From Anaeramoeba ignava BMAN (taxonomy: Eukaryota; Protista; Anaeramoebae), in the NCBI GenBank assembly GCA_028826165.1, contig JAPDFW010000096.1:124001-188000 (forward strand): a DNA stretch of 64,000 nucleotides, read 5' to 3'. How positions within the stretch are numbered: the stretch's first letter is position 1; every line of letters starts with the position of its first letter. Of the stretch, positions 12,648 to 50,826 are shown piece by piece. The translations under genes were made by a program, and so were the position numbers. The notes below the pieces were generated by a model that made no database searches, had not been told where the DNA came from, and saw only the letters and a list, made by a program, of their open reading frames with translations.

Positions 12648-15600
12648 ATGGAAAATCAAGAAATAAAACAAAAACCAATTGTTATTGATAATGTATTCAA
12701 ATTCCACTCTAAATTAAAATTTAAAATTAAAATTTAAATTGAAATTAAAATTAAAATTTAAATTAAAATTGAAAATTAAAATTGAAAATTGAAATTGAAA
12801 ATTAAAATTTAAATTGAATAAAATGCTAATTAAAAAAATCAGGGTTCTGGAATGATAAAAGCAGGATTTGCTGGTGATGATTTACCTACTTGCATTTTTC
12901 CATCAATGTATTAATTCAATCAACAATTAATTAATTAAGAAAAATTGAGAAAAATTCAAAAAAAATTAATTGAAAAAAAAAAATTTTCATTTTCAAAAAA
13001 TAATTTCAAAAAAAAATATTCAATCATTTAATAATATAATATCTAACTACACTTATAAATAAGTGTTGGAAAAGTCAAACACCAAAAAGTTATGGTTGGA
13101 GGTATACAAAACAATCTCTATATTGGTAATTCAGCTGAAGAATTTCGAGGATTATTGAAGTTACATTATCCAATTGAACACGGAATTGTCACAAATTGGA
13201 ATGAAATGGAGATGATTTGGAACCACGTTTATTCAGAACTTAATGTCAAGTCACAAGAAGTGTGTGAAAGATTGATTTTTCATAATTTCATTCTTGATTT
13301 ATTCAATACTAAATTTATTCAAAATTAAATGTGATTTTTTATTTAAATATTTTTAAAGCATCCGGTTTTACTTACTGAAGCCCCAATGAATCCAAAGAAA
13401 AATCGAGAGAAAGCAATTGAAATATTCTTTGAAACATATGGAGTTCCTTCATTTTATATTGCAATACAAGCTGTTATGGCACTTTATTCTTCAGGAAGAA
13501 CAACTGGTTTGATTTATTTTTAATTCATTTATTTCAATTTAATTTATTTTATTTTTTTAATTAAATTTATTTAATTTTTAGGTGTTGTTGTTGATAGTGG
13601 AGATGGTGTTACTCATATTGTTCCTGTTTATGAAGGCAAATTTCCAACTTATTTTAACTATTTTTAATCATAATCTATAACTGACTCTGAGAATTATTTA
13701 TAAACCAATTTATAAAATAATTTATATAATAATTTATATAATAATTTATCAAATAATTTATATAATAATTAATCAAATAATTTATATAATAATTTATATA
13801 ATAATTATATATAAAATAATTTATATAATAATTTATATAATAATTTTATATAATAATAATAATTTATATAATAAATAATATATATAATAATTTATATAAT
13901 AATATAATATAATAATTTTATATAATAATTTTATAATAATTTTATATAATTATTTATATAATTTATAAAATAATTTATTTAATAATTTATATATAATAAT
14001 TTATATAATAATTTATAATAATTTATAATTTAATAATTTATAATAATTTAAATAATTTAATATAAAATAATTTATATAATAATAATATATAAAATAATTT
14101 ATATATAATAATTTATAAAATAATTTATATAATAATTTATATATTTAATAATTTATATAATAATTTTTATATAAAATAATTTATAAAAATTTATTTATAA
14201 TAATTTATATAATAATTTATCAAATAATTTTATATAAAATAATTTATATAATAATTTATATAATAATTTATATATAATAATTTATAAAATAAATTTAATT
14301 TATAATAATTTATATAATAATTTATATTTATAATAATTTATAAAATATTTATCAAATAATATAATAATTTATATAATAATTTATATAATTTATATAATAA
14401 ATTAATTTATATAATAAAATATATAATAATTTTATAATAATTTATATAATAATTTAATTATAATAATTTAATAATAATTTATTAATAATTTAATAATTTA
14501 TATAATAATTTATATATAATAATTTATATAATAATTTATAAATAATTTATATAATAATTTATATATAATAATTTATATAATAATTTATAATAATTTAATT
14601 TATAAAATAATAATAATTTATATAAATAATTTATATAATAATTTTATAATAATAAATAATTTATAAAATAATTATATAATAATTTATATAATTTATATAA
14701 TAAATATAAATAATTTATAAAATAATATATATAATAATATTTATATAATAATTTATATAATAATAATTTATATAATATATAATAATTTTTATATAATAAT
14801 TTTTTATAATTTAATAATTTATTTAATAATTTATTTAATAATTTTTAATTTATATAATATATAATAATTTATATAATAATTAATTAATTTATATAATATA
14901 TAATAATTTATAAAAATTTTAATATAATAATTTATCAAATAATTTATAAAAATAATAATTTATATAATAATAATAATTATAATATAATAATTTATTTAAT
15001 ATAATAATTTATCAAATAAATAATAATTTTTATAAAATAATTTATATATAATAAATAAATTATATATAATAATTTATATAATAATTTATATAATAATTTA
15101 TAAAATAATTTAAATAATTTATTAAAATAAATTTATATAATAATTTTAAACTGGTTCGGGGAATTTATATAATAATTTATATAATTTATAAAATAATTTA
15201 TAATAATTTATATAATAATTTATATAATAATTTATAATTTAATAATAATTTTATAATAATTTATATAATAATTTTAAAATAATAATTTATATAATAATAA
15301 TTTATATAATAATTTTATAATAATAATATTTATATAATAATTTATAATTTATATAATAATTTTATAATAATAATTTATAATAATTTATATAATAATTTTT
15401 AATAATATAATAATTTATAATTAAAATAATTTATCAAATAATTTTATATAATAATTTAATAATTTATTTAATAATTTATATAATAATTTATATAATAATT
15501 TTATAATAATTTATATTAATAATTTATATAATAATTTATATAATAATTTATAAACAATAATTTATATAATATTTTAATAATTTATAAAAAATTTTTAATT

Positions 15601-16695
15601 TATATAATAAATAATTTATATAATAATTTATATAATAATTTATATAATTTTATAAAATAATTTATCAAATAATTTTTATAATAAATAATTAATTTATAAT
15701 TTATAAAATAATTTATATAATAAAATAATTTATATAATAATTTATATAATAATTTATATAATAATTTATATAATAATTTATATAATAATTTATATAATAA
15801 TTTATATAATAATTTATATAATAATTTATATAATAATTTATATAATAATTTATATAATAATTTATTTAATAAAAACAGGATTTTCTCTTCCTCAATCAAT
15901 TTCAAGAATAAATCTTGCAGGAAGAAATATTACTAAATATCTTCAATTATTACTTCGAAAATCAGGATATTCATTTATTACTTCAGCAGAATTTGAAATT
16001 GTCAGAAATATTAAAGAACAAAGTTGTGAATTGGCACAAGTATTTTTCAAAGATCAAACAGAAGAATTCGAAAAATCAATACAACCAATACAATATCAAC
16101 TTCCTGATAAAACAGAAATACAAGTAAACAAGAGGAAAAAAACGTTTATAATATTTATAATATTTATATTTAAATTGATATTTAATTTGAAATTTAAATT
16201 TTTTAATTTAAGATTGGAAGAGAAAGATTTCAAGCTCCAGAAATTCTTTTCAGACCAGAAATAATTGGCTTAGATTATCAAGGAATCCACGAAAATTTAG
16301 TCAATTCAATCCAAAAAACAGATGTTGATCTTCGATCAAGATTGTATCAAAATATTATTCTTTCTGGAGGAACAACAATGATTCCTCAATTTGGAAATCG
16401 TTTACTAATGGAAACTAAAAATATTGCTCCAAAAGATATTAATATTCGGTAATTTTATTCATTTTATATTTAACAAAAAAAAATAATTAAAAAACTGACA
16501 CTTTTTTTTTCATCTTTTTTTTTGGATTGAAATATTAATAATATTAATAGAATTATTGCTCCTCCTGAAAGAAAATTCTCTATTTGGATTGGTGGTTCAA
16601 TTTTGGCTTCTGTTTCCTATTTTCAAAAAATGTGGATATCAATGAATGAATATGATGAAACTGGAGTTTCAATTATTCATAAGAAATGTTTTTAA
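12648..16695 (+). CDS. ACTR1: actin-related protein 1 (centractin, dynactin filament subunit), 8 exons
   Basis: The reconstructed exons give PIVIDN|[40 protein letters not shown]|[76 protein letters not shown] and LLLRK are Arp1-type signatures. Confidence 0.9.
13636..15878 (+). other. 2243-nt GC-AG intron filled with an (ATATAATAATTT)n-like satellite
   Basis: The junction GAA G|gcaaat...aaacag|GA TTT restores the conserved PVYEGF. No GT is available at the homologous position. Confidence 0.75.
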
Positions 16696-23912: not shown

Positions 23913-26900
23913 ATGATTCCTTCTTCACCTATTTGGTATTTTACTCAGTCTTCTGACTATGGAATCAATAACGATTTATTTGCATATGCAACTCAAAATT
24001 ATGTTTTCATTTTAAATACAAAATCCAAATCAATAATAGGCCAACTTAATGGTCATAAATCAAAAGTAACTTCAGTTGCATTTTCCCAGAGCAAAAATAT
24101 GAATTATATCATCGCTAGCGGTTCCGAAGACAGAAACATTAAGGTCTGGGACGTTAAAACTTTCTCGGAAATTTCCTCTCATTCAAAACATAATTCAACC
24201 ATCTCTTGCATTTCATTCTCAAAATTGAAATATGACCTATTAATATCAGCAGATTTTCGAGGTTTTATTGTTTCGTGGTTTTGGAGCCAAGACAAAATAC
24301 AAAAATTTCAACCGCTTAAAATGAAAATTCTCTGCTTATCTTGCTCTCCTTTTAATCCCAATCATGTTGCTGTTGGCTATGAAAAGGGCTCCATATTGAT
24401 TATAGATATTTTCGAATGCAAAATCATTTTGAATCTCACAGGCCATCTTCATGATGTTCTTTCTCTTGACTGGTTCAGACCCCCTTTTGATAAAGCACAA
24501 ACAAATAAAACCTCACATGAGATCTTGCTCTCTTCTTCTAAAGATAAAACACTTCGTATATGGGACTTAAAAACTGGGCAAACTTTGAAGATTTTGTCTG
24601 TTCCAAAAACAAATCAATCAAAATCAAAAATTAATGAAAATATTTGGATCATTTCAAAATGGGTTTTATTTAAAACCGAAATCAAAATTATCTTCACTTC
24701 CATTAATGGCGAATTGGTTCTTTGGGATCTTACAAATGATCCTATTGCCAAAATCCTTCTAGATCCTGATCAAGATCAAGCAAACCCAAAAAATATTCAA
24801 CCAAAAACCCAAAAAAGAAAAAAAAGAAAAAAAGGAAAAAAAACAAATCAATCGTTTTTCCGATTTAATCAAAATCCATTAAGATTGATTTTTAACATCC
24901 AATTGGTTAATAACGACTCAGAACTTAAAGAATTCATTACAACGTCTCTCGACAGAAAAATAACATTTTGGAGCTTTGCTTCAAATACAAAATTGTGGGA
25001 AATAACAGCGTTAACTTCATATCCAACATCTCTTGATGGCTCTCCTTTGAACCCAGCAAATTTGGCAATTGGGTGTGGTGAGACAATCCAAATATGGAAA
25101 ACAGGCAATTTTGATCAACCCTTTGATTCTCGAACATTTTGGAAAGGAATCACTTCCAGAATTTCTTGTTTGAATTGGTCTTTTCGTGAGGAGAATATCC
25201 TTGCTTTTGGAAATTATGCAGGCGGTTTGGGTATTCTTAATATAAAAACTGGGAAAGTTGTTCAATTTGCTTCTGTTAATCAAAATCAAATTAAACAAAT
25301 GCAATGGATTGAATTAACAAAATCAAAAAAATCAAAAGAAAAAGTGGATCAAGAAATTAATCAAGAAGTTCTTAAAAAATTAATGATTTTTATTTTGGAT
25401 TCAAATGGAAATTTTTATCAGTCAGATCCTAAACAGCCAAAATTAAAACCTCAAAATGTTATTTTTGATTTACCAAAAAATGAAAATTTAAATGAAAATT
25501 TAAATCAAATTGAAAATGAAAATAAAAATCAAAATCAAAATCAAATTGAGATTGAAATTAAAAATTTAAATCAAATTGAAATTGAAAATTTAAATGAAAA
25601 TCAAAATGAAAATCAAAATGAAAATCAAAATTTAAATCAAAATCAAAATCAAAATCAAAATGAAAATCAAAATGAAAATCAAAATGAAAATCAAAATGAA
25701 AATCAAAATCAAAATCAATATCAAAATCAAATTCAAAATCAAAATCAAAATCAAAATGAAAATCAATATCAAAAAAAAAATCCAATCTGTTTCCATTGGA
25801 ATGACACCTTTGAAACACTTTCAATTGGAAATAAAGATGGATCTATTGATTTTTTTTCATTAAAAAATTCAGAAGAGGATATTCCCAAAAAAAATAGTAA
25901 ATCAGAAAAGGAAAATGAACTACATTTAGAATATTTATTCAATTTGCATTATCATTCTGATTCAATTCTTTCTGTGAAATGGCAAAAAACAATTTTTGGA
26001 AGGAATTTATTAGCAAGTGCATCTAGTGATTGCACAATCCAAATTTATAACATTGAAACAAAAGAACGCATATTGATTCTTAAAGGACATACTAAGGAAG
26101 TAACTGATCTTTGTTGGAGTCCACATGATTCCAATCTTTTAGCCTCAATATCTGCAGATGGAACAGCCCAAGTATGGAATATAGAGAATGAAAATCCAAG
26201 AGCAATTTCCAATTATAGAGACCATACAAAACCTTGCAAATGTATTTTTTGGAGCGAAACTAATTTGGATTTTATTTTTACTGGTTCAGATGATCAAACC
26301 GTTAGAATGTGGAATTATCAAATGCAAAAATTCGAAAAGCCTCCAAATATTCAAGTTGTTTCAAATGAACAAAAAATCGACAGTTGTGAGAAAATTGAAG
26401 AAAAAATGATTGATTTATTAGCAGAATCAAATGAGATGCATGAAGAGGAAAACAAATCAAAACAAGTCACCAAAAAAAGAAAATCTAAATCAAAAAGAAA
26501 AAAGAAAGCAAGTAACGAAAATGTGGAACAAAAAATATTTCTTACAGTTTCAAATACAAACGATATAGATTCTCGAGAAAAGTATGGAAATGCTTGTATA
26601 AATTTGGCAAAGATGTTATATTTAAATGAAAATGAAAATGAAAATGAAAATGAAATTAAAAAATCTAAATTTAATATCCCTTTATTTCTTCAAGAAAAAA
26701 ATGATCCAAATAAATATCATTTGCACAAATTATTCAATCATGAAATCAAACAAGATTCAACCCAAAAAGAATTCAATAATGAATTTGTTGTGAATTTTTG
26801 GAGATCAGAATTCGGGAAAATATTTGAAAAAGTAAATGATAATGGGATGCAAACAAATATTAATCAAAATAACTTAAACAATCACATTTTAGCACTTTCG

Positions 26901-27869
26901 CCTTGTATGGGGATTGATTTCTGGAAGAAAATGATCGAAAAAAAGGCGAGAATATTTGAGAATTCACATCAATATCACATTTCAGTTTGCTATTATCTTG
27001 CATGTCATCAAGTAAGAAAAGCAATTGATGTTTATAAAAAAGCAAATATGCTTGATGAAGCAATTGCGCTTGCAAAAGAACGACTTTCTCCACAAGATCC
27101 AGAAATTCCAGCATTATATCATTTATTAGCCGAAAAATCTGAGAAAGAAGGACTTTATGAAAAAGCAGCTGAATGTTATATTGCTCTTAAAAATCCAAAA
27201 GATGCAATTTCATCACTTGTCAGAAAAGGAGATTTTTTTGCTTTAAAAATTGCTCTTCAAATTTCACAAGTTTGCAAACAGGATTTGGTATCATTTCCTG
27301 ATTTATCTTATCAAAACATCCGTGTTTTGTACGGATTAGAACTCCAGTCTATTCATTCTTTTGAAGATGCAATCCAATTTTTTGATTCTTCAAATCATTT
27401 GAAAATCCCTTTAATTTTCCATCATTTGCATCAAACATTACAAGAAGTTTCAACCATTTCTTCCAATAAGAATTCAAATGAAACGATTAATTCTCAAATT
27501 TTACTTTCTGATAATATTTTATCAAAATTTGCTTCAATTTTCAAAATAGATGATGAATATTTATTTAAATTATTGATTATTTTATGGGAAAAATTCCAAA
27601 TTCCTCTTGAAACTCAAAGTTTACAAAAGTTTCTTATTGAACTTGAAAATTCTAATGTTCTTTCTGTTATCCAAAAATGGGAAGAAGCGAAAAGAATTGA
27701 ATATAATTTTGCATTCCACATTTCAAAAATGTTTCTTTATTTGATTTTAGGAAATTATCAAAAAGGATTTTTAATTTTTAATGAAATTTCAAATGAAAAA
27801 TTAGAAAAAGTGGAATTATTATTATTATTAAAAATTTGGAATAAAATAATAATTAAATTAAAAAATTAA
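23913..27869 (+). CDS. GEMIN5: Gem-associated protein 5 (SMN complex); WD40 propellers plus TPR-like dimerisation domain; intronless
   Basis: N-terminal IPSSPIWY matches the Gemin5 PxSPxWY motif. Many WD40 repeats follow, including FWKGITSRISCLNW..ENILAFG. The C-terminal YHISVCYYLACHQVRKAIDVY..LDEAIALAKERL..G.YEKAAECY matches the Gemin5 dimerisation region as I recall it. Confidence 0.85.
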   Translation: MIPSSPIWYFTQSSDYGINNDLFAYATQNYVFILNTKSKSIIGQLNGHKSKVTSVAFSQSKNMNYIIASGSEDRNIKVWDVKTFSEISSHSKHNSTISCISFSKLKYDLLISADFRGFIVSWFWSQDKIQKFQPLKMKILCLSCSPFNPNHVAVGYEKGSILIIDIFECKIILNLTGHLHDVLSLDWFRPPFDKAQTNKTSHEILLSSSKDKTLRIWDLKTGQTLKILSVPKTNQSKSKINENIWIISKWVLFKTEIKIIFTSINGELVLWDLTNDPIAKILLDPDQDQANPKNIQPKTQKRKKRKKGKKTNQSFFRFNQNPLRLIFNIQLVNNDSELKEFITTSLDRKITFWSFASNTKLWEITALTSYPTSLDGSPLNPANLAIGCGETIQIWKTGNFDQPFDSRTFWKGITSRISCLNWSFREENILAFGNYAGGLGILNIKTGKVVQFASVNQNQIKQMQWIELTKSKKSKEKVDQEINQEVLKKLMIFILDSNGNFYQSDPKQPKLKPQNVIFDLPKNENLNENLNQIENENKNQNQNQIEIEIKNLNQIEIENLNENQNENQNENQNLNQNQNQNQNENQNENQNENQNENQNQNQYQNQIQNQNQNQNENQYQKKNPICFHWNDTFETLSIGNKDGSIDFFSLKNSEEDIPKKNSKSEKENELHLEYLFNLHYHSDSILSVKWQKTIFGRNLLASASSDCTIQIYNIETKERILILKGHTKEVTDLCWSPHDSNLLASISADGTAQVWNIENENPRAISNYRDHTKPCKCIFWSETNLDFIFTGSDDQTVRMWNYQMQKFEKPPNIQVVSNEQKIDSCEKIEEKMIDLLAESNEMHEEENKSKQVTKKRKSKSKRKKKASNENVEQKIFLTVSNTNDIDSREKYGNACINLAKMLYLNENENENENEIKKSKFNIPLFLQEKNDPNKYHLHKLFNHEIKQDSTQKEFNNEFVVNFWRSEFGKIFEKVNDNGMQTNINQNNLNNHILALSPCMGIDFWKKMIEKKARIFENSHQYHISVCYYLACHQVRKAIDVYKKANMLDEAIALAKERLSPQDPEIPALYHLLAEKSEKEGLYEKAAECYIALKNPKDAISSLVRKGDFFALKIALQISQVCKQDLVSFPDLSYQNIRVLYGLELQSIHSFEDAIQFFDSSNHLKIPLIFHHLHQTLQEVSTISSNKNSNETINSQILLSDNILSKFASIFKIDDEYLFKLLIILWEKFQIPLETQSLQKFLIELENSNVLSVIQKWEEAKRIEYNFAFHISKMFLYLILGNYQKGFLIFNEISNEKLEKVELLLLLKIWNKIIIKLKN

Positions 27870-28902: not shown

Positions 28903-31900
28903 TTATTTCTTTTCGGTATGGAAATCAATAATTTCTTCATAAATTAATTTTCTTAATTCTTCAGTAGATAATTCTGAATTTTCAAAAGAAAAATCAAATT
29001 TTTCTGTGCATTCAGTCTATAGAATTTAATAAAATTTAAAAGAAGAAAAATATTAGAATTTTATAATTAATTTTATAAATAATTTTATAAATAATTTTAT
29101 AATTAATTTTATAAATAATTTTATATATAATTTTATAAATAATTTTATATTTAATTTTATATATAATTTTATAAATAATTTTATATTTAATTTTATATTT
29201 AATTTTATAAATAATTTAATAAATAATTTAATAAATAATTTTATAAATAATTTTATAAATAATTTTATAAATAATTTTATAAATAATTTTATAAATAATT
29301 TTATAAATAATTTTATAAATAATTTTATAAATAATTTTATAAATAATTTTATAAATAATTTTATAAATAATTTTATAAATAATTTTATAAATAATTTTAT
29401 AAATAATTTTATAAATAATTTTTATAAATAATTTTATAATTAATTTTATAATTAATTTTATAATTAATTTTATAATTAATTTTATAATTAATTTTATAAT
29501 TAATTTTATAATTAATTTTATAATTAATTTTATAATTAATTTTATAAATAATTTTATAAATAATTTTATAAATAATTTTATATTTAATTTTTATAAATAA
29601 TTTTATAAATAATTTTATTAATAATTTTATAAATAATTTTATAAATAATTTTATATATAATTTTTATATATAATTTTTATATTTAATTTTATATTTAATT
29701 TTATAAATAATTTTATAATTAATTTTATAAATAATTTTATAAATAATTTTATAAATAATTTTATATTTAATTTTATAAATAATTTTATAAATAATTTTAT
29801 AAATAATTTTATATTTAATTTTATAATTAATTTCATAATTAATTTTATAATTAATTTTTATAAATAATTTTATAAATAATTTTTATAATTAATTTTATAA
29901 TTAATTTTATAATTAATTTTATAATTAATTTTATAATTAATTTTATAATTAATTTTATAAATAATTTTATAAATAATTTTATTAATAATTTTATATTTAA
30001 TTTTATAATTAATTTTATAATTAATTTTATAAATAATTTTATAATTAATTTTATAATTAATTTTATATTTAATTTAATAAATAATTTTATAAATAATTTT
30101 ATATTTAATTTTATAAATAATTTTATAAATAATTTTATAATTAATTTTATAAATAATTTTATAAATAATTTTATATTTAATTTTATATTTAATTTTATAT
30201 TTAATTTTATAATTAATTTTATATTTAATTTTATAAATAATTTTTATAAATAATTTTATTTAAAATTTATAATTAATTTTATATTTAATTTTTATTAATA
30301 ATTTTATAAATAATTTTATATTTAATTTTATAATTAATTTTATATTTAATTTCATAAATAATTTTATAAATAATTTAATAAATAATTTTATATTTAATTT
30401 TATATTTAATTTTATATTTAATTTAATAAATAATTTCATAATTAATTTTATATTTAATTTTATATTTAATTTTATATTTAATTTTATATTTAATTTTATA
30501 AATAATTTTATATATAATTTTATAAATAATTTTATAAATAATTTTATAAATAATTTTATATATAATTTTATAAATAATTTTATAAATAATTTTTATATTT
30601 AATTTCATTAATAATTTTATATTTAATTTTATAATTAATTTTATATTTAATTTTATAAATAATTTTATAATTAATTTTATATTTAATTTTATATTTAATT
30701 TTTATATTTAATTTTATATTTAATTTTATATTTAATTTTATATTTAATTTTATATTTAATTTTATAAATAATTTTATATTTAATTTTATAAATAATTTTA
30801 TAATTAATTTTATAAATAATTTTATAAATAATTTTATAAATAATTTTATAAATAATTTTATATTTAATTTTATAAATAATTTTATATATAATTTTATAAT
30901 TAATTTTATAAATAATTTTATAAATAATTTTATATTTAATTTTATATTTAATTTTATAAATAATTTTATAAATAATTTTATATATAATTTTATAAATAAT
31001 TTTATATATAATTTTATATTTAATTTTATAAATAATTTTATAAATAATTTTATAAATAATTTCAATCTATACAGCCTCATCAGGATCATAATGAGATTCA
31101 AGATAAGGATGTTTTAAAGCCTCATCCACAGTAATTCTTTTATCAGGATTAAAAGTAAGCATTTTATCAAGAAGATCCAAAGCCAAAGGATCAGCATTAG
31201 TATATAGTTTAGAGAAAGGTTGTTTTTGTTTTTTAGGGACTTTCATCATATATTCTTTAGCAGCTTCATTTTGAAAAGTATCAATTTCCTCAACAGAAGG
31301 AGTACCAATAAGTTCCACAATCAATTCGATTTGGTGAATATAATTACGACCAGGAAAAAGAGTTTTTCTTCCAAGAATTTCAGCAAAAATGCATCCAACT
31401 GACCAAACATCAATAGCCTTTGTATATTCTTTCCATGATAAAATAATTTCAGGTGCGCGAAACCATCTTGTTGCAACATATTCAGTCAGCATATTGTCCT
31501 CGTTATCAGTGAATCTTGCCAGTCCAAAATCGCAAATTTTCAATGAACAATTTCCGTTAAGTAAGATATTACTTGGTTTCATATCTCGATGAATAACGTT
31601 TGCTGAGTGAATATATTTTAAACCGCAAAGCATTTGGTACAAAAAATATTGAATGTGTTCGTTAGTTAATTTTTGCTTGGAAAGTATTACTCGTCGAAGA
31701 TCAGTGTCAACTAGTTCGCTTACTAAATAAACATCGTTGAAATCAGATTTAGAATCGGGTATAAGAATGTCAATTAGTGTCATTATGTTTTGATGCTTGA
31801 AATGCTTTAATAACTTGATTTCTCTTAATGTTCGTTTCGCATCTGTTACTCTTCCAAAAACGTTAATGATCTTTTTGATTGCTACTTTTGTTTTTGTTTC

Positions 31901-33942
31901 AAGATCCATTGCAGAGCTTAATTTTATAAATAATTTTATAAATAATTTTATTAATAATTTTATAAATAATTTTATAAATAATTTTATAAATAATTTTATA
32001 AATAATTTTATAAATAATTTTATAAATAATTTTATAAATAATTTTATAAATAATTTTATAAATAATTTAATATATAATTTTATATTTAATTTTATAAATA
32101 ATTTTATAAATAATTTAATAAATAATTTTATAAATAATTTTATAATTGATTTTATATTTAATTTTTAAATAATTTTATAAATAATTTTATAAATAATTTT
32201 ATAAATAATTTTATAAATAATTTTTTTATAAATAATTTTATAATTAATTTTATATTTAATTTTATATTTAATTTTTTATAATTAATTTTATAATTAATTT
32301 TATAAATAATTTTATAAATAATTTTATAATTAATTTTATATTTAATTTTATATTTAATTTTATTAATAATTTTATATTTAATTTTATATTTAATTTTATA
32401 TTTAATTTTATAAATAATTTTATAAATAATTTTATAAATAATTTTTAAAAATAATTTTATAAATAATTTTATATTTAATTTTATAAATAATTTTATATTT
32501 AATTTTATATATAATTTTATATTTAATTTTATAAAATAATTTTTATTAATAATTTTATAAATAATTTTATATTTAATTTTATTAATAATTTTATAAATAA
32601 TTTTATATTTTAATTTTATAAATAATTTTATAAATAATTTTATATTTATTTTAATTTTATTAATAATTTTATAAAATAATTTTATAATTAATTTTTATAT
32701 TTAATTTTATAAATAATTTTATATATAATTTTATAATTAATTTTATAAATAATTTTATAATTAATTTTATTAATAATTTTATATTTAATTTTATAATTAA
32801 TTTTATAATTAATTTTATATTTAATTTTTTTATATTTAATTTTATATTTAATTTTTTATATTTAATTTTATATTTAATTTTATATTTAATTTTATAATTA
32901 ATTTTATAAAATAATTTTATAAATAATTTTATAAATAATTTTATAAATAATTTTATATATAATTTTTATATATTTTAATTTTTTTATAAATAATTTTATA
33001 TATAATTTTATATTTAATCTTAATAATAATTTTATAAATAATTTTATAAATAATTTTATATATAATTTTATATTTAATTTTATAAATAATTTTTATATTT
33101 AATTTTATATTTAATTTTATATATAATTTAATAAATAATTTTATAAATAATTTTATAAATAATTTTATAAATAATTTTATAATTAATTTTATAAATAATT
33201 TTATAAATAATTTTATAATAATTTTATAAATAATTTTATAATTAATTTTATAAATAATTTTATATTTAATTTTATAAATAATTTTTTATAAATAATTTTA
33301 TAAATAATTTTATAAATAATTTTATAAATAATTTAATATATAATTTTATATTTAATTTTATAAATAATTTTATAAATAATTTAATAAATAATTTTATATA
33401 AATAATTTTATAATTGATTTTATATTTAATTTAATAAATAATTTTTTATATTTAATTTTATATTTAATTTTATATTTAATTTTATAAATAATTTTTATAA
33501 ATAATTTTATAATTAATTTTATAATTAATTTTTTATATTTAATTTTATATTTAATTTTATATTTAATTTAATAAATAATTTTATAAATAATTTTATAATT
33601 AATTTTATATTTAATTTTATATTTAATTTTATAAATAATTTTATTAATAATTTTATAAATAATTTTATATTTAATTTTATATTTAATTTTATATTTAATT
33701 TTATAAATAATTTTATAAATAATTTTATAAATAATTTTATAAATAATTTTATAATTAATTTAATATTTAATTTTATTGTTTCGGTTAATAAATTTTAATT
33801 TTATTTTTGTTGTATTTTTTATTTTTAATTTTATTTACCAAACAACTCCATATGCTCCTTGACCAATTAATTTAATTAATTTGTATTTCGAATCGACTTC
33901 AAATACTGTTCCTCCAACTGAAAATGCAACTTTTTTTGACAT
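28903..33942 (-). CDS. ERK-type MAP kinase with a TEY activation loop, 3 exons
   Basis: Exon 1 MSKKVAFSVGGTVFEVDSKYKLIKLIGQGAYGVVC. Exon 2 VAIKKI..AKRTLREIKLL..HRDMKPSNILL..DFGLAR..TEYVATRWFRAPE..HPYL. Exon 3 TECTEKFDFSFE..IYEEIIDFHTEKK*. Introns at 33838-31917 and 31072-29017. Confidence 0.95.
29017..31072 (-). repeat. MAPK intron 2 (2056 nt) filled with the 12-bp satellite (ATAAAATTATTT/ATAAAATTAAAT)n
   Basis: GT-AG bounded; tandem 12-mer variants throughout. Confidence 0.9.
31917..33838 (-). repeat. MAPK intron 1 (1922 nt) filled with the same 12-bp satellite
   Basis: GT-AG bounded; the last unit runs into the acceptor (ataaaattaAG). Confidence 0.9.
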
Positions 33943-34234
33943 AAATAAAAAAGAAAAATGATTTTGTAATTTTTTTTTTTTTCGATTTTTTTTTTGTTTT
34001 TTTATTTTTTTTTGATTTGTTTTGATTTTTCATGATTCACGATTTCAATTTGTTTTTCCTCTTTTTTTTTTTTGTTTTTTTAAATTATTTTTTTTTAAAA
34101 TGGTTTTTTGTTTTGTTTTTGCTATTTTATTTATTATTTTTTTTGTTGGAATTTTTTTTTAAAAAAAAGAGTTTTTGCGAATTTTCACTTTTTAATTATT
34201 TTTAAATTAAATTTTTAATTTGATCGAAAAAAAA

Positions 34235-34470
34235 AAGATCAATTCTAATATTTATTTTATAAGATCAATTCTAATATTTATTTAATCTTTTTTCTAATAT
34301 TTATTTTATAAGATCAATTCTAATATTTATTCAATATTTATCTAATATTTATTTTATAAGATCAATTCTAATATTTATTTAATATTTATTTTATAAGATC
34401 AATTCTACATTTTATTCAATATTTATTTAATATTTATTTTAAAAGATCAATTCTAATATTTATTCAATAT
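34235..34470. repeat. six copies of AAGATCAATTCTA(A/C)(T)ATTT between the phosphatase array and the MAPK start
   Basis: Copies near 34235, 34261, 34310, 34358, 34395 and 34443. Confidence 0.85.
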
Positions 34471-34523
34471 TTATTTATATTTTATTTATATTTTATTTAT
34501 ATTTATTGAAGAAAAAAAAAAAT

Positions 34524-35383
34524 TTAATCTTTCTTTTTATAATCTTTAACACAAAAAACTTTATTATCTGGAAGTAAAACAGCAGAAATATTTCCAGAAT
34601 GACCACCAGTTGTATCAACAAGAATTCTTTTTTGTTTAAAAATAACTTTATTTTGAGGAACATGACCAGAAACAATAATTTTTGAGCAAATTCAGGAGCA
34701 GTTAAATGATTTCTATCACAAATCCAAGTTGGTCTTGGATCACTTAAATCTTTTTTTCTTAAACATTCAATATGTTCATCCCAACTTTTATTATCATTAG
34801 GAATTCCTGAATGAATAAATACATAATCAGGATGTTCAACAATCCAAGGAAGATTAATATAAAAATCTCGATATTTTTGTGGAAATTTAGATGATAAACT
34901 TGGTTGTTTTGGAAATTCTGCTCCTAATCCTTTAAATGTAGGAAGTGATGAATAAACTACTGGATATCTTCTTCCTTGTAAATGCATTTTCTCTTTATTT
35001 TCTTCATTATAAAGTTGCCATTTATATTTATAATCATCAACCATTTTATCAAAATCAACATTTTCAGGTTCTGGAATAAGTTTAAGAAATGTCATTAATG
35101 CTAAATCATGATTTCCACAAATAAATGTTGTTTTGGGTCGATTTTCCCAAAGATTAATAAGAAAATCAAGTGTTTCTTTTGGATTTGGACCTTTATCAAT
35201 ATAATCTCCAAGAAAAACAACCCAAACATCATCAAAATTTTCAATATTTTCTTCTAACATTTCAAATAATTTTTTTAATCCATTTATATATGAATGAATA
35301 TCTCCAATAGCTATTACTCTTCCTGAAATTTGTGTTTCCATGCTTTTATTTTTATTTTTATTTTTATTTTTATTTTTTTCCAT
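34524..35383 (-). CDS. RLPH (Rhizobiales-like) PPP-family metallophosphatase, copy A; 1-nt deletion in a T-run near 34680
   Basis: Motifs GDIHS, FLGDYIDKGP, GNHD, MHLQGRR, FIHSG. Adding one base restores IVSGH..DTTGG..KKKD* as in the paralogs. Confidence 0.8.
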
Positions 35384-35637
35384 TCTTATTCTTATTTTTA
35401 TTTTTAAATTTTAAATTTTAAATTTTAAAAAAAATGAAAAGAAAAAATGATTTTTTAATTTTATAAAAAAATTGAGAAAAGAAATTAAAAAAATGAGAAC
35501 AAAATTCTTTTTTTAAAGAGAAAAATGAGAACAAAATAAAATGATTTGGAAAATTGATTTAATTTGAATTTAGAATGAAAAATTAATTTGAAGTAAAAAG
35601 AATGTTAAAAAAAAATTCTAAGAAAAATATTAACTAA

Positions 35638-36487
35638 CTAATCTTTCTTTTTATAATCTTTAACACAAAAAACTTTATTATCTGGAAGTAAAACAGCAGA
35701 AATATTCTCAGAATCGCCACCAGTTGTATCAACAAGAATTCTTTTTTGTTTAAAAATAACTTCAGGTTGTTCAACATGACCAGAAACAATAGTTTTTTGA
35801 GCAAATTCAGGAGCAGTTAAATGATTTCTATCACAAATCCAAGTTGGTCTTGGATCACTTAAATCTTTTTTTCTTAAACATTCAATATGTTCATTCCAAC
35901 TTTTATTATCATTAGGAATTCCTGAATGAATAAATACATAATCAGGATGTTCAACAATCCAAGGAAGATTAATATAAAAATCTTGATATTTTTGTGAAAA
36001 TTTAGATGATAAACTTGGTTGTTTTGGAAATTCTGCTCCTAATCCTTTAAATGTTAGGAAGTGATGAATAAATAAGTGGATATCTTCTTCCTTGTAAATG
36101 CATTTTCTCTTTATTTTCTCCATTATAAAGTTCCCATTTATATTTATAATCATCTGCTATTTTATCAAAATCAACATTTTCAGGTTCTGGAATAAGTTTA
36201 AGAAATGTCATTAATGCTAAATCATGATTTCCACAAATAAATGTTGTTTTGGGTCGATTTTCCCAAAGATTAATAAGAAAATCAAGTGTTTCTTTTGGAT
36301 TTGGACCTCTATCAATATAATCTCCAAGAAAAACAACCCAAACATCATCAAAATTTTCAATATTTTCTTCTAACATTTCAAATAATTTTTTTAATCCATT
36401 TATATATGAATGAACATCTCCAATAGCTATTACTCTTCCTGAAATTTGTGTTTCCATGTTTTTATTTTTATTTTTATTTTTTTCCAT
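35638..36487 (-). CDS. RLPH-like PPP phosphatase, copy B; 1-nt insertion near 36055
   Basis: ORFs 36047..36487 and 35638..36153 join when one T is removed (aaatgttagg here vs aaatgtagg in the paralogs). Confidence 0.8.
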
Positions 36488-36702
36488 TGTTATTCTTATT
36501 TTTAATTTTAAATTTTAAATTTTAAAAAAAATGAAAAGAAAAAATGATTTTTTAATTTTATAAAAAAATTGAGAAAAGAAATTAAAAAAATGAGAACAAA
36601 ATAAAATGATTTGGAAAATTGATTTAATTTGAATTTAGAATGAAAAATTAATTTGAAGTAAAAAGAATGTTAAAAAAAAATTCTAAGAAAAATATTAACT
36701 AA

Positions 36703-37578
36703 CTAATCTTTCTTTTTATAATCTTTAACACAAAAAACTTTATTATCTGGAAGTAAAACAGCAGAAATATTTTCATTTTCACCACCAGTTGTATCAACAA
36801 GAATTCTTTTTTGTTTAAAAATAACTTCAGGTTGTTCAACATGACCAGAAACAATAGTTTTTTGAGCAAATTCAGGAGCAGTTAAATGATTTCTATCACA
36901 AATCCAAGTTGGTCTTGGATCACTTAAATCTTTTTTTCTTAAACATTCAATATGTTCATCCCAACTTCTATTATCATTAGGAATTCCTGAATGAATAAAT
37001 ACATAATCAGGATGTTCAACAATCCAAGGAAGATTAATATAAAAATCTCGATATTTTTGTGAGAATTTAGATGATAAACTTGGTTGTTTTGGAAATTCTG
37101 CTCCTAATCCATCAAATGTAGGAAGTGATGAATAAATAAGTGGATATCTTCTTCCTTGTAAATGCATTTTCTCTTTATTTTCTCCACTATAAAGTTGCCA
37201 TGGACGTTTATAATCATCAACTATTTTATCAAAATCAACATTTTCAGGTTCTGGAATAAGTTTAAGAAATGTCATTAATGCTAAATCATGATTTCCACAA
37301 ATAAATGTTGTTTTGGGTCGATTTTCCCAAAGATTAATAAGGAAATCAAGTGTTTCTTTTGGATTTGGACCTCTATCAACATAATCTCCAAGAAAAACAA
37401 CCCAAACATCATCAAAATTTTCAATATTTTCTTCTAACATTTCAAATAATTTTTTTAATCCATTTATATATGAATGAACATCTCCAATAGCTATTACTCT
37501 TCCTGAAATTTGTGTTTTCATTCTTCTTTTTTTTATCTTTTCTCTTTTTTCTTTTTCAAGATGATGTTTTTTTTCCAT
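36703..37578 (-). CDS. RLPH-like PPP phosphatase, copy C (intact)
   Basis: 291 aa with GDVHS, FLGDYVDRGP, GNHD, MHLQGRR, LPWIVE, FIHSG, IVSGH and DTTGG. Confidence 0.9.
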   Translation of the reverse strand: MEKKHHLEKEKREKIKKRRMKTQISGRVIAIGDVHSYINGLKKLFEMLEENIENFDDVWVVFLGDYVDRGPNPKETLDFLINLWENRPKTTFICGNHDLALMTFLKLIPEPENVDFDKIVDDYKRPWQLYSGENKEKMHLQGRRYPLIYSSLPTFDGLGAEFPKQPSLSSKFSQKYRDFYINLPWIVEHPDYVFIHSGIPNDNRSWDEHIECLRKKDLSDPRPTWICDRNHLTAPEFAQKTIVSGHVEQPEVIFKQKRILVDTTGGENENISAVLLPDNKVFCVKDYKKKD

Positions 37579-37772
37579 TTAATTAATTTTCAAAATAAAT
37601 TTTAAATTGAAATTAAAAAAAAATTTTTTCTATAAAATAATTCTAATTTTAAAAAAGAAAAAATGAAAAAAATGAATTTTCGATTTTTATTTTTTGAAAT
37701 TTTTTAAAAAGAAAAAATGAATGAAAAGAAAAAAAAGAAATTTTAGAAATGAAAGAAATGAAAGAAATTGAT

Positions 37773-40547: not shown

Positions 40548-42422
40548 ATGTTTTATAATAAAAAATTTTCATTTAAAAAATCTCAATCTAATTCTTCTGT
40601 TGAAATTCCAATATCAAAAATTGAACCTAATAAAAAAGGTCAATTAATTAAAGCACGAATAATTTGGAAAAGTGATTTAAAAAAACTTTCTTCTGAAAAA
40701 TTTATGCTTAAAATACGTCTTATTGATTTTGAAGGAACTGAAATTCAAGCAATTGCATTTGAAAAAATAGCAGAAAATTTATCAGAACAATTAATAATTG
40801 GAAAAGTTTATTTAATTTTTGATTTTCTTCCTCAAAAGAAATATTATACAAATGATGATTCAATGGAATTAAAATTTAATGAATATACAAGTTTTGAATT
40901 ATGTCAAGATGATAATACAATTCCTCAATTAAAATTCACTCCAATTCAAATATCAACCATAGTTTCTTCATCTCAAAAAAAAGATATTGTTAATACTATT
41001 GGCATTATTGATTCAGTTTCTAATCCAATTTCTTTATTATCTCGAAATTCTCAACAACATACAAAATTATCTTTAAAAATTTATGATAAAAATTCTTCAA
41101 TAGAGGTTGCTTTTATGGAATGAAGTTGCAATGAATTTTCATCGTTTATATTCTTTGGAATCTCAAAGGAATATTAATCCAATTATTATTTCCTTAAAAA
41201 ATGTTCGTGTTGAAAATTATAATGAAAAATATTTAATAGCAGAAAAAAATTCTCAAATTGAATTAAATCCAAATTTAGATAATTTAGAAATATCAAGGGA
41301 TTTTTTTGATCAAATTCAAGATCAAATTCAAAATCAAAATCAAAATCAAAATCAAAATCAAAATCAAAATCAAAATCAATATCAAAATCAAAATCAAAAT
41401 CAAAATCAAAATCAAAATCAAAATCAAAATCAAAATCAAAATCAAAATCTATATAAAAAATTCAATGAAAATGAAAATCAGAATTTAATTATACACCAAT
41501 TTCAAAATCAAAACGAAATTGAAAATCAAAATCAAAATCAAAATCAAAATGAAAATCAAAATGAAATTGAAATTGAAATTGAAAATCAAAATGAAAATCA
41601 AAATGAAATTAAAAATGAAAATCAAAATGAAAATGAAATCAAAATGAAAATCAAAATCAAAATCAAAATCAAAATCAAAATCAAAATGAAATTGAAATTG
41701 AAATTGAAAATCAAAATGAAATTGAAAATCAAAATCAAAATCAAAATCAAAATCAAAATCAAATTAAAAATCAAATTAAAAATCAAAATCAAAATCAAAA
41801 TCAAAATCAAAATCAAATTAAAATAAGTTCAATTCAAAATAATAATAAATTTAATTTTAATTTAATTCAAAATAATAATCAAAATAAATTCCAAATACAA
41901 ATAATTCATGCAATTAAAGATCTTTATCAAAATCAAACAATTCAACACTTTTATATCAAAGGATTAATCTCTTATATTGTTTCACATGACTTAAACAAAA
42001 TAATGTATCCATCTTGTATTTCTGAAAATTGTAAAAAAAAAGTTAATAGACAAGATAATCAATGGTTTTGTTCATCATGTTCTAAAAAAATGCAAAATTG
42101 TCATTGGAGATTCAATTTAAAAGCAAGAATTCATGATTATTCAGGATCTTGTTTTGTAACCATTTTTGATCAAACTGCTCAATCTTTACTTGGAATATCA
42201 GCAAATCAAATACAAAATATCATTCATTCAGGAAAAATCAAAGAATATCATAAAATTTTCCAAAATGTAAAATATCAAGAATATCTACTTAAAATTACCA
42301 AAAAAAATTCGAAAAAATTTATGAATAGTTTTGTTGCTGAATCAATTACTCCAATACGAAATGAAATTATTGAATATTCCAAATATTTGATTAAAATTAT
42401 TCACTCATATTCCTCAAATTGA
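40548..42422 (+). CDS. RPA70-like OB-fold ssDNA-binding protein (DBD-A, B and C with Zn ribbon; no N-terminal DBD-F); frameshifts near 41112 and in the N/Q tract
   Basis: IKARIIWKS..IRLIDFEGTEIQAIAF..GKVYLI (DBD-A); IVNTIGII..VALWNE (DBD-B); YPSC..NCKKKV..WFCSSC..WRFNL..IHDYSG..VTIFD..A.SLLG (DBD-C). Confidence 0.8.
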
Positions 42423-47135: not shown

Positions 47136-50100
47136 ATGAGTAACAAAAAACAACAAAAGTAAAAATAAAAATAAAAATTTAAAATAAAAATTAATAAAAT
47201 AAAAAAACGTTTTAATTTCTTTCTTCTTTCTTTCTTTCTTCTTTAAAAGAAATCAAAATCAAAATCAAAATCAAAATCAAAATCAAAATCAAAATAAATT
47301 ACAAATAAGTCCAAAAACAAATAGACAATATACAATCGATAATGAAGCAAAAATTTTAAGTGAAATCCCACAAAAACATTACAAACAAAATTTCCGAATT
47401 GAAAAAGAATTATTTTCAATTCTTTCACGTGATTTTGATGAAAATGAAATTCTTCAAAAAAAAAACCAATTTAGTTTTATGTTTCAAGCAATAAACAACT
47501 GGCTTTCAGAAAAAGTCATTAATTCATATGATAAATTTGTAGAAGAAATTTCAAAAATTAATGAAATTAAGCAAGATCTTCAAATATCAGGAATTTATTG
47601 TAGAAATTTAAGAGGAAAATTGGAAGAATCACGAAATAATTTAGTTGTTTCATCATTTGAAGTTATAACAAAGCAAAGGAAAAGAAAATTTCTATTGGAA
47701 GTAATTAATCAATTACAAGCAATACGTGAAGTTAAAAGAAAAGGAGAATCACTTTCAGAAATTCTCGATAATGAGGATTTTTCTATCGCAATTCGCGAGT
47801 GCGATGAGCTTCAGCGCTCAATAAAATCGCTAATGGATTTTAAATGTTTGCAAGATATCAGGGATTTTCATTTGGAAGGATATAATTTAATTCAGGAAAA
47901 ACTTGATCAAAGTCTTGCCAAACAAAGCGAGACTTTTGATCCGCAAATTTATGTAAAAACAATCGAAGGATACCAGCTCCTTAACAGAGAATCCCAGATT
48001 AAGGATAAGCAGCATAAATATTATTTGGATCTCATTTCTCAAAAAACAAACCAATTGATAATAAGTTTTGTGAGAGAAGGAAAAAGTAAACAAGAAAAGG
48101 CTTCATTGAAAAAAATGAATTATGCAAGATTACTAAGTTATTTGAACGAATCCAACTTCCTGAATTGTTTGATTTCCATCTTTGAAGCATTCACTAATAT
48201 TTTGGATAATTTTCTGCAAAACTATCAATGGCTCAAAAATAATAGAAATCAAAACAGAACAATCAAAACATTGGGAAGAGCATTTTCGCAACTGCGAATT
48301 GTAATTTGGGACAATTTGCAAGAAAAAATTGTCACAGCAATCACTTCCCGTTTGAACCAAGGAAAAAGCTACAATTTGGGTCTTTCTTCATTTCGGGTTG
48401 ATAATTTTTTGAAGGTTCTTTATGTCTTGGATATTTTTATTGATGTTGGTTCAAATTTTTGCTCATTTAAACCAGATAAATTACAAATGATAAAAAACGA
48501 AAACAAAAGCAAAAACAAAAACAAAAACAAAAACAAAAACAATATTAGTGATGAAAATAATATCGATAGCGAAAACGAGTATAATGAAAATGAAAATAAC
48601 AACAATAACAGCAATAATAATAATAATAGCAATAATCAAATATATCCAAATTTGGAATCAGATCAAACGGAAAAAATCAAATCTCCTAAAAATAAAAAAA
48701 CTCCAAAATCAACGGAGAAAAAATCACGACAATTGTTTGAGGATCACACTCTAAAACTCAGACAAACAATGCGAAATCGAAGCGAAAGTTATTTCCAAAC
48801 CTTCCATTCGTTGAGGTTGGACGACATCCGAGAAATGATATCAGCAGAGATGTGGCAAAGATGCCCAACATCTCCCGATTTCTCGTTAAAAGATTTAGCA
48901 GTTTCAAGTTATTTCCATTCAATTAGAAAGCATTCTCATCACCAAAACGAGGATCACATTGATAATCAAAATCAAAACTCGAATATTTTCCAAAAATTCA
49001 ATCAAGAATCATCGAATCCATTTTCGCAGAAGAATATCAACGAGCTTCTTGGATCTTCACAACAAAAACAATCGCTTCAAAAGTCGCAAAACTTGAATTC
49101 GGATGAGGATGAAAATATTGACGAACAACTCAAACAAGATTTCATTGATGAAGACGAAGATTCTCATTTAAACACAAAATCAACGATTCGGGCGCAATTA
49201 TCACCGAATAAACATCAATATCAACAAAATCAAGATTATGAACAGTCATTTAACGAAAATCAACAAACAGACTCTTTTGAGGATGATTTAAAAGGACCCA
49301 TTTTGACAAGTGTTTCCATTAATATTGTGAAATTCATAGGCAAATATATCAAACTTATGGAAGTTTTGCAGCCGATTTCAATGCAAATATTTGTTGGATT
49401 AACAGAATTATATGAAGCATATCTTTTTTCAGTTTACAATTTTTTTGCAACATCAGAAATCCAGAAACAACAACAACAATTACAATCGCAATTGCAGCCA
49501 CAAACACAACCTCCTTTAACACAACAACACCACCATCATAACCATAATTATCAATTCGATATCACAACAGAATACAATTTGACTGATGAGGAAATACATA
49601 AAATCAAAGCAATCACTCAAAAAACAACAATATTCCAAAGAATTTTTTCCAATTTAATATTATCTCCCGATGTTATTTCGGATTTAAATTCTCCTGAAGA
49701 ACTATATGGTCTTAGATATAGAATCATCTCAATTGAATCTGTTATTTTTATTCAGAAATCACTTCTTTCTCTCAAAGACAGAATACAAGAATTACTGGGA
49801 AAACAACTTGATGAAAATCCAATTTTCTTCCAAAAATTTTTCACAGATTTATTGAATATTCCTCCTCGTTTTCAAAAATATATGTATCAATATTCTGTTT
49901 GGGCTTCAGCTAATTTTGGTGGTATTTTGCATTCAATATCTTCAATAAAATGGGAGAGTGGAATGATGGGAGCTGAGCATAGTCCGTATGTTAATGAATT
50001 TAAAAAAGAAATTGTTTCATTTGCAAGAAGATTGGATTTTATTGATACTTTGTCACTTCCTAAAGAACAAAGGAAAACTATTTGGGATTTTTTAGTATTG

Positions 50101-50826
50101 TTAATTATGAAATTATTGATTGAAGGATATTCTCGTGCAAAGAAATGTAGCAATGAAGGTATAAATCAAATCAAAATTCAAATCAAAATCAAATTAAAAT
50201 TCATTTATAATATTAAAATTCATTTATAATTAAATCAAAATTCATTTATAATATTAAAATTCAAATTAAAATTAAATCAAAATTCAAATTCAAAATTAAA
50301 ATTCATTTATAATATTAAAATTAAAATTAAAATTAAAATTAAAATTAAAATCAAAATTAAAATCAAAAATTAAAATTAATATTAAAATTAAAAAGGAAGA
50401 GCCTTAATGTCGTTAGATCTTTCAACACTACAAAGTACAATCAAAGAAATCTCAAAATTAAATTCAATTCCTTATGTTGATTTAGTTGATAATTATATTA
50501 AAGCATTTTATCTTCCATCTAAAGAATTTATTCGTTGGGTTAGAAAAAATCTTGATGTAAATAAAAATAAAAATAAATAAAAATAAAAATTTTTTTTTTA
50601 CTTTTAGGGAAAATTTTTTTTTAATTTATTTATTCTTCTTTATTATTCAAAAAATTAAAAAAATAAACAGAAATATCCAGAAAAACAAGTAGCTAATTTA
50701 TTATTATGTGGAATTGGTCAAAAAATGAAAAGAAAAGAAAGACAAGAATATATTGCTAAAATTCAATCAATTTATCAAAATCAAAGAAGAGATATTATTG
50801 CTGATTTTTCTAACGTGAAAAAATAA
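47136..50826 (+). CDS. VPS50: syndetin / VPS50 (EARP complex subunit), 4 exons
   Basis: Vps54_N-like region (VINSYDKFVEEISKINEIKQDL); YFQTFHSLRLDDIREMISAEMWQRCP; IGKYIKLMEVL; Syndetin_C motif IEGYSRAKKCSNEG|RALMSLDL..VDNYIKAFYL. Confidence 0.9.

Follow-up and report, generated by a model that had tools for sequence, protein, structure and literature searches.

We analysed 64,000 nucleotides (hereafter the window) of the genome of Anaeramoeba ignava (Metamonada), i.e., contig positions 124001-188000 of an assembly of 42.8 Mb in 147 contigs. The window carries three tandem genes for PPP phosphatases of the type of the Rhizobiales-like phosphatases (RLPH, or Rhilphs), upstream of a gene for a mitogen-activated protein kinase (MAPK). 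We think it most likely, with a probability of about 0.65, that the locus is a young, A. ignava-specific RLPH triplication whose adjacency to the MAPK is incidental or, at best, recently arisen. We rate the adjacency in this way because none of the relatives examined conserves it and because, to our knowledge, neighbouring genes of eukaryotes rarely form enzyme-substrate modules. By sequence and modelled fold the array is a member of the already described RLPH family, and we regard this assignment as solid. Phosphatase and MAPK are also already annotated, as 'metallophosphoesterase' and 'mitogen-activated protein kinase' in A. ignava, and the phosphatase as 'rlph2' in A. flamelloides. Judging from its homologues, copy A of the array would be a Mn/Fe-type metallophosphatase that prefers phosphotyrosine (pTyr), and the pT-x-pY activation loop of MAPK would be its most plausible class of substrate.

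Organisation of the locus

The three phosphatase genes are intronless and lie head-to-tail on the minus strand, one per repeat unit of ~1.1 kb, in the same orientation as the MAPK. Given as window coordinates, the locus reads as follows, with open reading frame abbreviated as ORF.

36703..37578, minus strand: RLPH-type PPP phosphatase copy A, intact 291-aa ORF (Metallophos 1e-14) with the motifs GDVHS, GDYVDRG, GNHD, HSG and SGH
35638..36487, minus strand: RLPH copy B, in which an extra A at 36055/36054 leaves ORFs of 146 and 171 aa
34524..35383, minus strand: RLPH copy C, one base short in the A-run 34683-34679, immediately ahead of the (V)SGH motif
33943..34523, minus strand: spacer from copy C to the MAPK start codon, 581 bp
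33839..33942, minus strand: MAPK exon 1, with the start codon and the glycine-rich loop GQGAYGVV
31917..33838, minus strand: MAPK intron 1, 1,922 bp, GT-AG, almost all 12-bp minisatellite, GC ~2%
31073..31916, minus strand: MAPK exon 2 (Pkinase 8e-62), encoding the core of the kinase: HRDMKPSN, DFG and the activation loop with TEY
29017..31072, minus strand: MAPK intron 2, 2,056 bp, GT-AG, with the same 12-bp minisatellite as intron 1
28903..29016, minus strand: MAPK exon 3, the C-terminal L16-like tail and the stop codon

The initial annotation of this DNA had described three tandem, intronless, co-oriented phosphatase genes about 580 bp upstream of a TEY MAPK. We recovered the positions, the strand and the absence of introns, but only copy A has an open frame. 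The distance from the homologous stop codon of copy C (34526-34524) to the MAPK ATG is 581 bp, and the MAPK end at 28903 was also correctly placed. Among the motifs that had been listed for the array (MHLQGRR after GNHD, LPW, VSGH and DxxGG), GNHD, MHLQGRR, LPW and VDTTGG are present in all three copies, but VSGH is in frame in A and B only.

The array belongs to the RLPH family

Metallophos was the only Pfam match of the phosphatase. The best sequence match of copy A in the PDB was Arabidopsis RLPH2 (5vjv, E 1.2e-29), followed at a distance by PP2A (6e-6). We modelled copy A with AlphaFold2 from an alignment of 22 sequences, which gave a mean predicted local distance difference test (pLDDT) of 92.9 and a predicted template modelling score (pTM) of 0.90. 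When this predicted structure was searched with Foldseek, 5vjv came first (E 2.7e-22, template modelling (TM) scores of 0.82/0.80, root-mean-square deviation (rmsd) of 1.9 Å, 292 columns). The TM scores did not exceed 0.55 for lambda phosphatase (0.54), Shewanella PTP (0.52), ApaH (0.40), PP1 and PP2A. As far as the predicted structure goes, RLPH2 is the solved structure closest to copy A, including the helices of the family-specific HLQGRR insert, by which RLPH2 has a deeper active site.

The closest database relatives of copy A are three A. flamelloides proteins (52-53% identity), two of which are named 'tyrosine-protein phosphatase rlph2'. These are followed by proteins of Planoprotostelium fungivorum (41%), of a Promethearchaeota metagenome-assembled genome (MAG, 41%), of protist transcriptomes (33-40%), of many Planctomycetaceae and unnamed metagenomes (33-39%), and of Naegleria lovaniensis (34%), and by the RLPH2-like proteins of plants (29-30%). 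This spread bears out the earlier remark that RLPHs are patchily distributed.

A 30-45-residue insert ending in HLQG(R/L)R splits these relatives into two groups. It is found in Anaeramoeba, plants, Naegleria, Planoprotostelium, protist transcriptomes and the Asgard protein (38 of the 38 rows of the insert clade), and is missing in 24 of 24 Planctomycete-type rows, which keep just the last Arg-Trp. In a quick maximum likelihood tree of 127 rows the insert clade had an SH-aLRT (Shimodaira-Hasegawa-like approximate likelihood ratio test) support of 94. In a more careful tree of 62 rows, from which we dropped the insert columns, one branch separated the insert-bearing proteins from the rest (ultrafast bootstrap (UFBoot) 100, SH-aLRT 97, present in 100% of the bootstrap trees), and Anaeramoeba was the insert-bearing lineage attaching nearest to the bacterial Planctomycete-type group. 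Both trees were left unrooted and were made without SLP, ALPH and alpha-proteobacterial references. Within this sampling, the phylogeny that the initial annotation had called for places Anaeramoeba in the RLPH insert clade. Its identification of RLPH-type phosphatases in a non-plant protist stands, given the sequence and fold match to Arabidopsis RLPH2 (AtRLPH2), the shared insert and the position on the RLPH side of the 100/97 split.

The catalytic residues D33, H35, D65, R69, N96, H97, H196 and H246 show little or no variation in the alignments, and the same is true of the insert residues H139, L140, Q141, G142 and R144 across the eukaryotic clade. R144 is invariant even in proteins that lack the insert and is probably the active-site phosphate ligand. 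The preceding R143 is variable (Leu in A. flamelloides) and, if R144 is indeed a phosphate ligand, would stand beside the catalytic centre.

RLPHs are characterised by a basic pocket next to the active site for the phosphothreonine (pThr) of pTxpY, by a preference for pTyr and by insensitivity to okadaic acid. In sequence, Rhilphs were defined in 2004 by an insert between GNH(E/D) and HAG that holds LxxAxPxxH (Andreeva & Kutuzov, PMC535813). SAPNY is replaced in them by (I/L/V)D(S/T)G, whose S/T is Glu or Gln in plants (PMC535813). Copy A has the PPP metal- and phosphate-binding motifs (GDxHG, GDxxDRG, GNH(D/E), H(A/G)G and a C-terminal GH in the general form) and the insert, lacks SAPNY and has no long tails. 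In our alignment LxxAxPxxH is degenerate in A. ignava (LSSKFSQKY, with Ala, Pro and His all replaced); it is partly kept in the A. flamelloides paralogues and kept in most other clade members and in the Planctomycete proteins. VDTTGG of copy A has the bacterial-type Thr at the place of the plant-type Glu/Gln, and two further plant-specific inserts are missing. In view of these features we place copy A within the RLPH clade as a short and early-branching form, and do not class it as a plant-type RLPH2.

Arabidopsis RLPH2 (At3g09970; PDB 5vjv/5vjw) nevertheless resembles copy A in its PPP catalytic motifs, in the insert after GNHD that ends in MHLQGRR, in its fold and in the absence of long regulatory tails. 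Even the tandem arrangement has a parallel, RLP1 and RLP2 being side by side on Arabidopsis chromosome 3 (PMC535813). The two proteins are only ~30% identical, however, and the plant inserts (~18 aa after HLQGRRW, ~13 aa before HAG) are absent from copy A, which reads VDTTGG and SGHVEQPE where the plant protein reads IDEGGG and SGHHGK. They also differ in the degenerate LxxAxPxxH of A. ignava and in the neighbouring MAPK, which is of TEY type, the loop that AtRLPH2 disfavours.

The A. flamelloides RLPHs (P0004, P0005, P0006) form a 100/99 clade with the A. ignava array and share its short architecture. They are encoded by three dispersed, intron-bearing genes and have HLQGLR, whereas the A. 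ignava genes are intronless, in tandem and next to a MAPK. The A. flamelloides loci span 4.5-5.4 kb. Paralogues 2 and 3 (L002-L004) have introns near residues 77 and 186, and paralogue 1 (L001) has one tblastn gap only, near the first of these positions. Intron loss or an origin by retrocopy could account for the intronless state in A. ignava. The Planctomycete-type bacterial PPPs (e.g., P0011 and P0018, from Planctomycetaceae MAGs) are 36-38% identical to copy A and share the catalytic motifs, LPW and VDTTGG, but they keep LxxAxPxxH, lack the whole 30-45-residue insert and lie on the other side of the 100/97 branch.

Some of these traits would suit a phosphatase that acts on something other than a MAPK, either other pTyr proteins or a non-protein phosphoester, as in ApaH-like enzymes. 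They include the attachment of Anaeramoeba next to the bacterial Planctomycete-type proteins, the lack of the second and third inserts of plants, the bacterial-type VDTTGG, the degenerate LxxAxPxxH and the poor conservation of the first Arg of HLQGRR, which A. flamelloides does not keep. Yet the predicted fold matches AtRLPH2 at an rmsd of 1.9 Å, insert helices included, and the remaining residues of HLQGRR hardly vary in the eukaryotic clade. We consider a non-MAPK target improbable.

The Promethearchaeota protein (P0008, contig JBQSIE010000080.1, L033:9357-10199) is 41% identical to copy A, and its HLQGRR insert is complete and of the eukaryote type. The surrounding genes have a prokaryotic or archaeal look; they encode HycI, a tRNA intron endonuclease and a HisKA-type sensor kinase that carries a response-regulator domain in fusion. 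This Asgard protein either results from transfer from a eukaryote or points to where the insert-bearing clade began. We also recovered 80 distant bacterial PPP loci from metagenome contigs (20-29% identity over the full length, up to 44% on short N-terminal segments); none had the insert or a MAPK nearby, and they are uninformative.

The copies are young and two of them are frameshifted

The array is a young, lineage-specific tandem triplication. A genome-wide search of A. ignava for RLPH matches returned the three copies of the array and no others. The tandem repeat copies are 95-97% identical, with ~0.02-0.03 synonymous substitutions per site (dS) between pairs. Among the coding parts of A, B and C, 39 of 816 aligned nucleotides are variable, and the spacer of ~215 bp was duplicated along with the genes. 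Pairwise ratios of nonsynonymous to synonymous substitution rates (dN/dS) revealed no purifying selection between copies. They were 0.83, 2.04 and 1.06, none distinguishable from 1, and with just 22-32 substitutions per pair such ratios cannot tell 0.5 from 1. The variable sites are spread over the three codon positions (16/13/10). Along the sequence they are clumped: 20 neighbour pairs are within 3 nt of each other where 5.2 are expected, a value reached in 0 of 20,000 shuffles. The clumps occupy the part of the insert directly ahead of HLQGRR and two C-terminal loops, and include swaps of whole codons, e.g., GAA to CCT. Short conversion events or multi-nucleotide changes in relaxed copies are consistent with this pattern, and so would be diversifying selection acting on surface loops.

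Copy A keeps every metal- and phosphate-binding residue. In copy C the conserved Arg of GDxxDRG is replaced by Lys (GDYIDKG), and the in-frame ORF continues in the wrong frame to 34493. The NCBI model P0002 (250 aa) spans the break of copy B by means of an artificial intron. Copies B and C are either decaying duplicates or carriers of unpolished Nanopore errors, and we see about even odds that both frameshifts are real. The assembly was produced from 2017-era Nanopore reads, corrected with Racon and Nanopolish and then by two rounds of Pilon. Because this is early Nanopore polishing and the tandem repeat is nearly identical between copies, residual single-base errors are quite possible, above all in the A-run of copy C. 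Should copies B and C in fact have intact frames, the three-fold amplification would be genuine and the frameshifts errors of the assembly.

One could go further and suppose that the whole array is decaying, that copy A is becoming a pseudogene and that the RLPH function is being lost in A. ignava. Pairs that include copy A have a dN/dS near 1 like the others, the variable sites are even over codon positions and two copies are frameshifted, all of which would agree with such a loss. No transcript-derived RLPH protein was recognised among the database matches, which says little. We regard general decay as very unlikely: the frame of copy A is open throughout and none of its catalytic residues is lost, the substitutions are too few to separate a dN/dS of 0.5 from 1, and the frameshifts may be sequencing errors, that of copy C being an indel in an A-run. 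A run of undeclared type from another study (40 million letters, 2022) contains 29% of the sampled words of 33800-37700. This share exceeds what is expected of DNA at less than 1x coverage, so the run may be RNA and may hint at expression.

The adjacent gene encodes an ERK-type MAP kinase

The joined translation of the three exons is, residue for residue, the NCBI protein P0121 (353 aa), which is 57-66% identical to ERK-type MAPKs of many eukaryotes. It has the features of this type, namely a CMGC kinase domain, TxY followed by V-A-T-R-W-(Y/F)-R-A-P-E, and a C-terminal acidic stretch. The activation loop reads ...DNMLTEYVATRWFRAPE (loop LTEYVATRWFRAPE), and the acidic stretch, HYDPDEA, is near the C-terminus, at what we take to be the usual docking-site position of ERK-type kinases. 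With the kinase core as query, the genome yielded 19 CMGC matches; those other than this gene all have CDK, CK2, DYRK or PRP4-type loops. The degenerate DNA pattern for Y-V-x-T-R-W-(Y/F)-R-A-P-E matched with zero mismatches at the MAPK gene only.

A transcript-derived EukProt protein, P0122 (72% identity), looks like another MAPK paralogue, but we rejected this reading because the transcript is chimeric. The first ~125 residues of P0122 are CDK-like, and over its C-terminal two thirds it is an exact match to the window MAPK through the exon 2-3 junction. Because of this identity across the junction, the MAPK is transcribed and its exon 2-3 junction is real.

The MAPK introns are filled with a 12-bp minisatellite, AATTTTATAAAT (plus strand), and its variants. 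There are ~384 copies across the gene, with a GC content of ~2%, and yet the introns are GT-AG spliced. The same 12-mer array is also found at window positions 3107-3707, 13692-15872 and 54061-54803. GC content is ~20% over the window and 2-5% inside the repeat blocks.

The linkage is not found in relatives

We searched the called genes, complemented by tblastn, for a MAPK within ±10 kb of the A. flamelloides RLPH genes and found none (0 of 3). The reciprocal search for an RLPH within ±10 kb of the A. flamelloides MAPK loci was also negative (0 of the 2 loci fetched). No MAPK was found within ±10 kb of the RLPH genes of Naegleria lovaniensis and Planoprotostelium fungivorum. Hence, the comparison of synteny in related genomes that had been suggested at the outset gave a negative answer in all three species.

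Very few enzymes with the PPP fold are known to be tyrosine-specific. RLPH2 is among them, and its first physiological substrates, plant TDY MAPKs, were reported in 2026. In that report AtRLPH2 targets the TDY (D-group) MAPKs, which it binds via features outside the activation loop (PMC12817480). It was 19-fold less active on the TEY peptide of MPK3, a single D-to-E change costing ~12-fold, and did not dephosphorylate the TEY kinase MPK3 (PMC12817480). For the RLPHs as a whole, MAPK pTxpY loops are the sole substrates proven in vivo (PMC12817480). According to the passage that cites it in the same report, AtRLPH2 also acts on a human ERK pTEpY peptide (PMC12817480). The initial annotation had described RLPH2 as acting on dually phosphorylated pT-x-pY MAPK loops; MAPK loops are indeed its targets, but TDY is preferred and TEY is a poor substrate (PMC12817480). 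A functional analogue of the proposed activity is found in human VHR/DUSP3 and the MAPK phosphatases, with pThr-guided removal of pTyr from pTxpY (PMC12817480). These have an unrelated, cysteine-based fold, and A. ignava has DSPc and classical PTP genes of its own elsewhere.

The adjacency had been interpreted as a linked on/off module, in which the RLPH removes the activation-loop pTyr of the neighbouring MAPK and in which the pair was kept together, and the phosphatase amplified, for co-regulation. In its favour, the only RLPH genes of the genome lie 581 bp from the one canonical MAPK that we found and share its orientation, the MAPK retains the acidic HYDPDEA at the presumed ERK docking position, and both the in-vivo substrates of AtRLPH2 and its activity on the human ERK peptide point to MAPK loops. 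Against these stand the missing linkage at three RLPH and two MAPK loci of A. flamelloides and in the two other species, the 12-19-fold weaker action of AtRLPH2 on TEY than on TDY, and its failure on MPK3. Moreover, in the assembly two copies out of three are broken, no purifying selection was detected between the copies, and A. ignava has other phosphatases for pTyr, including classical PTPs and at least 15 DSP-type enzymes. The predicted complex of the MAPK with copy A scored 0.00, which is no evidence either way. A MAPK module with the phosphatase amplified beside its substrate is thus not supported so far, and we judge it unlikely.

Several observations nonetheless weigh against our preference for an incidental or recent neighbourhood. 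With 15,022 predicted genes (PMC11550330), the chance that the only RLPH locus flanks the only detected MAPK is ~2/15,022 = 1.3e-4. Adjacency by chance is therefore a priori unlikely (~1e-4), and we keep the module under consideration, without counting it as refuted. The single canonical MAPK is itself a lower bound, the search having been made exon by exon with the best candidates scored. The two Anaeramoeba species share no microsynteny around the RLPH and MAPK genes and, because no neighbouring genes are shared here, the missing linkage in A. flamelloides is weak evidence. The frameshifts of copies B and C are those of the assembled sequence. Finally, kinase and phosphatase co-vary between the two species: A. 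ignava has TEY and HLQGRR, whereas A. flamelloides has TQY in 6 of 6 MAPK clusters (P0127, P0128, P0131, P0376, P0377, P0381) and HLQGLR in 3 of 3 RLPHs, a pairing that would also suit a module. TQY is rare, as it occurs in 3 of the best 120 MAPK matches, all from A. flamelloides.

A broader proposal is that the pTyr of the MAPK loop is the ancestral substrate of eukaryotic RLPHs, far beyond plants, that the A. ignava locus is a co-regulated pair and that the first Arg of HLQGRR is what recognises the residue in the middle of TxY (E with R in A. ignava, Q with L in A. flamelloides). We find this combination doubtful. The A. ignava genome is an unusually clean test case in this respect, with one RLPH locus adjoining one canonical MAPK, and its sister species A. 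flamelloides supplies a natural paired change, TQY with HLQGLR. An intact, short RLPH from a deep-branching metamonad, without the plant inserts, is also a convenient minimal enzyme for asking if the removal of pTyr from MAPK is the old function of the family. If the link to the MAPK is false, the locus is an annotated phosphatase duplication beside an annotated kinase.

Genomic context and other observations

We excluded contamination or a bacterial gene as the source of the array, given the 246,680-bp contig, the spliced eukaryotic neighbours, the introns in the A. flamelloides orthologues and the GC content of ~20%. The supplements of the Anaeramoeba genome paper mention metallophosphoesterases of the symbionts only. 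Elsewhere in the A. ignava genome, at least two classical PTP (Y_phosphatase) genes are in tandem at C35:651739-654640, a further tandemly duplicated tyrosine phosphatase locus.

On the 5' side of the array are genes for the replication protein A large subunit (40548-42422, plus strand), a syndetin/Vps54-like protein (47479-50229, plus strand) and a PIG-X-like protein (51158-52996, minus strand); counterparts of these three are missing around the RLPH and MAPK loci of A. flamelloides. The replication protein A gene is broken over several ORFs. On the other side, a Gemin5-like protein of 1,318 aa (23913-27869, plus strand) is encoded tail to tail with the MAPK. It has WD40 propellers, separated by a long low-complexity insert rich in Asn, Gln and Glu, and a GEMI5 TPR domain.

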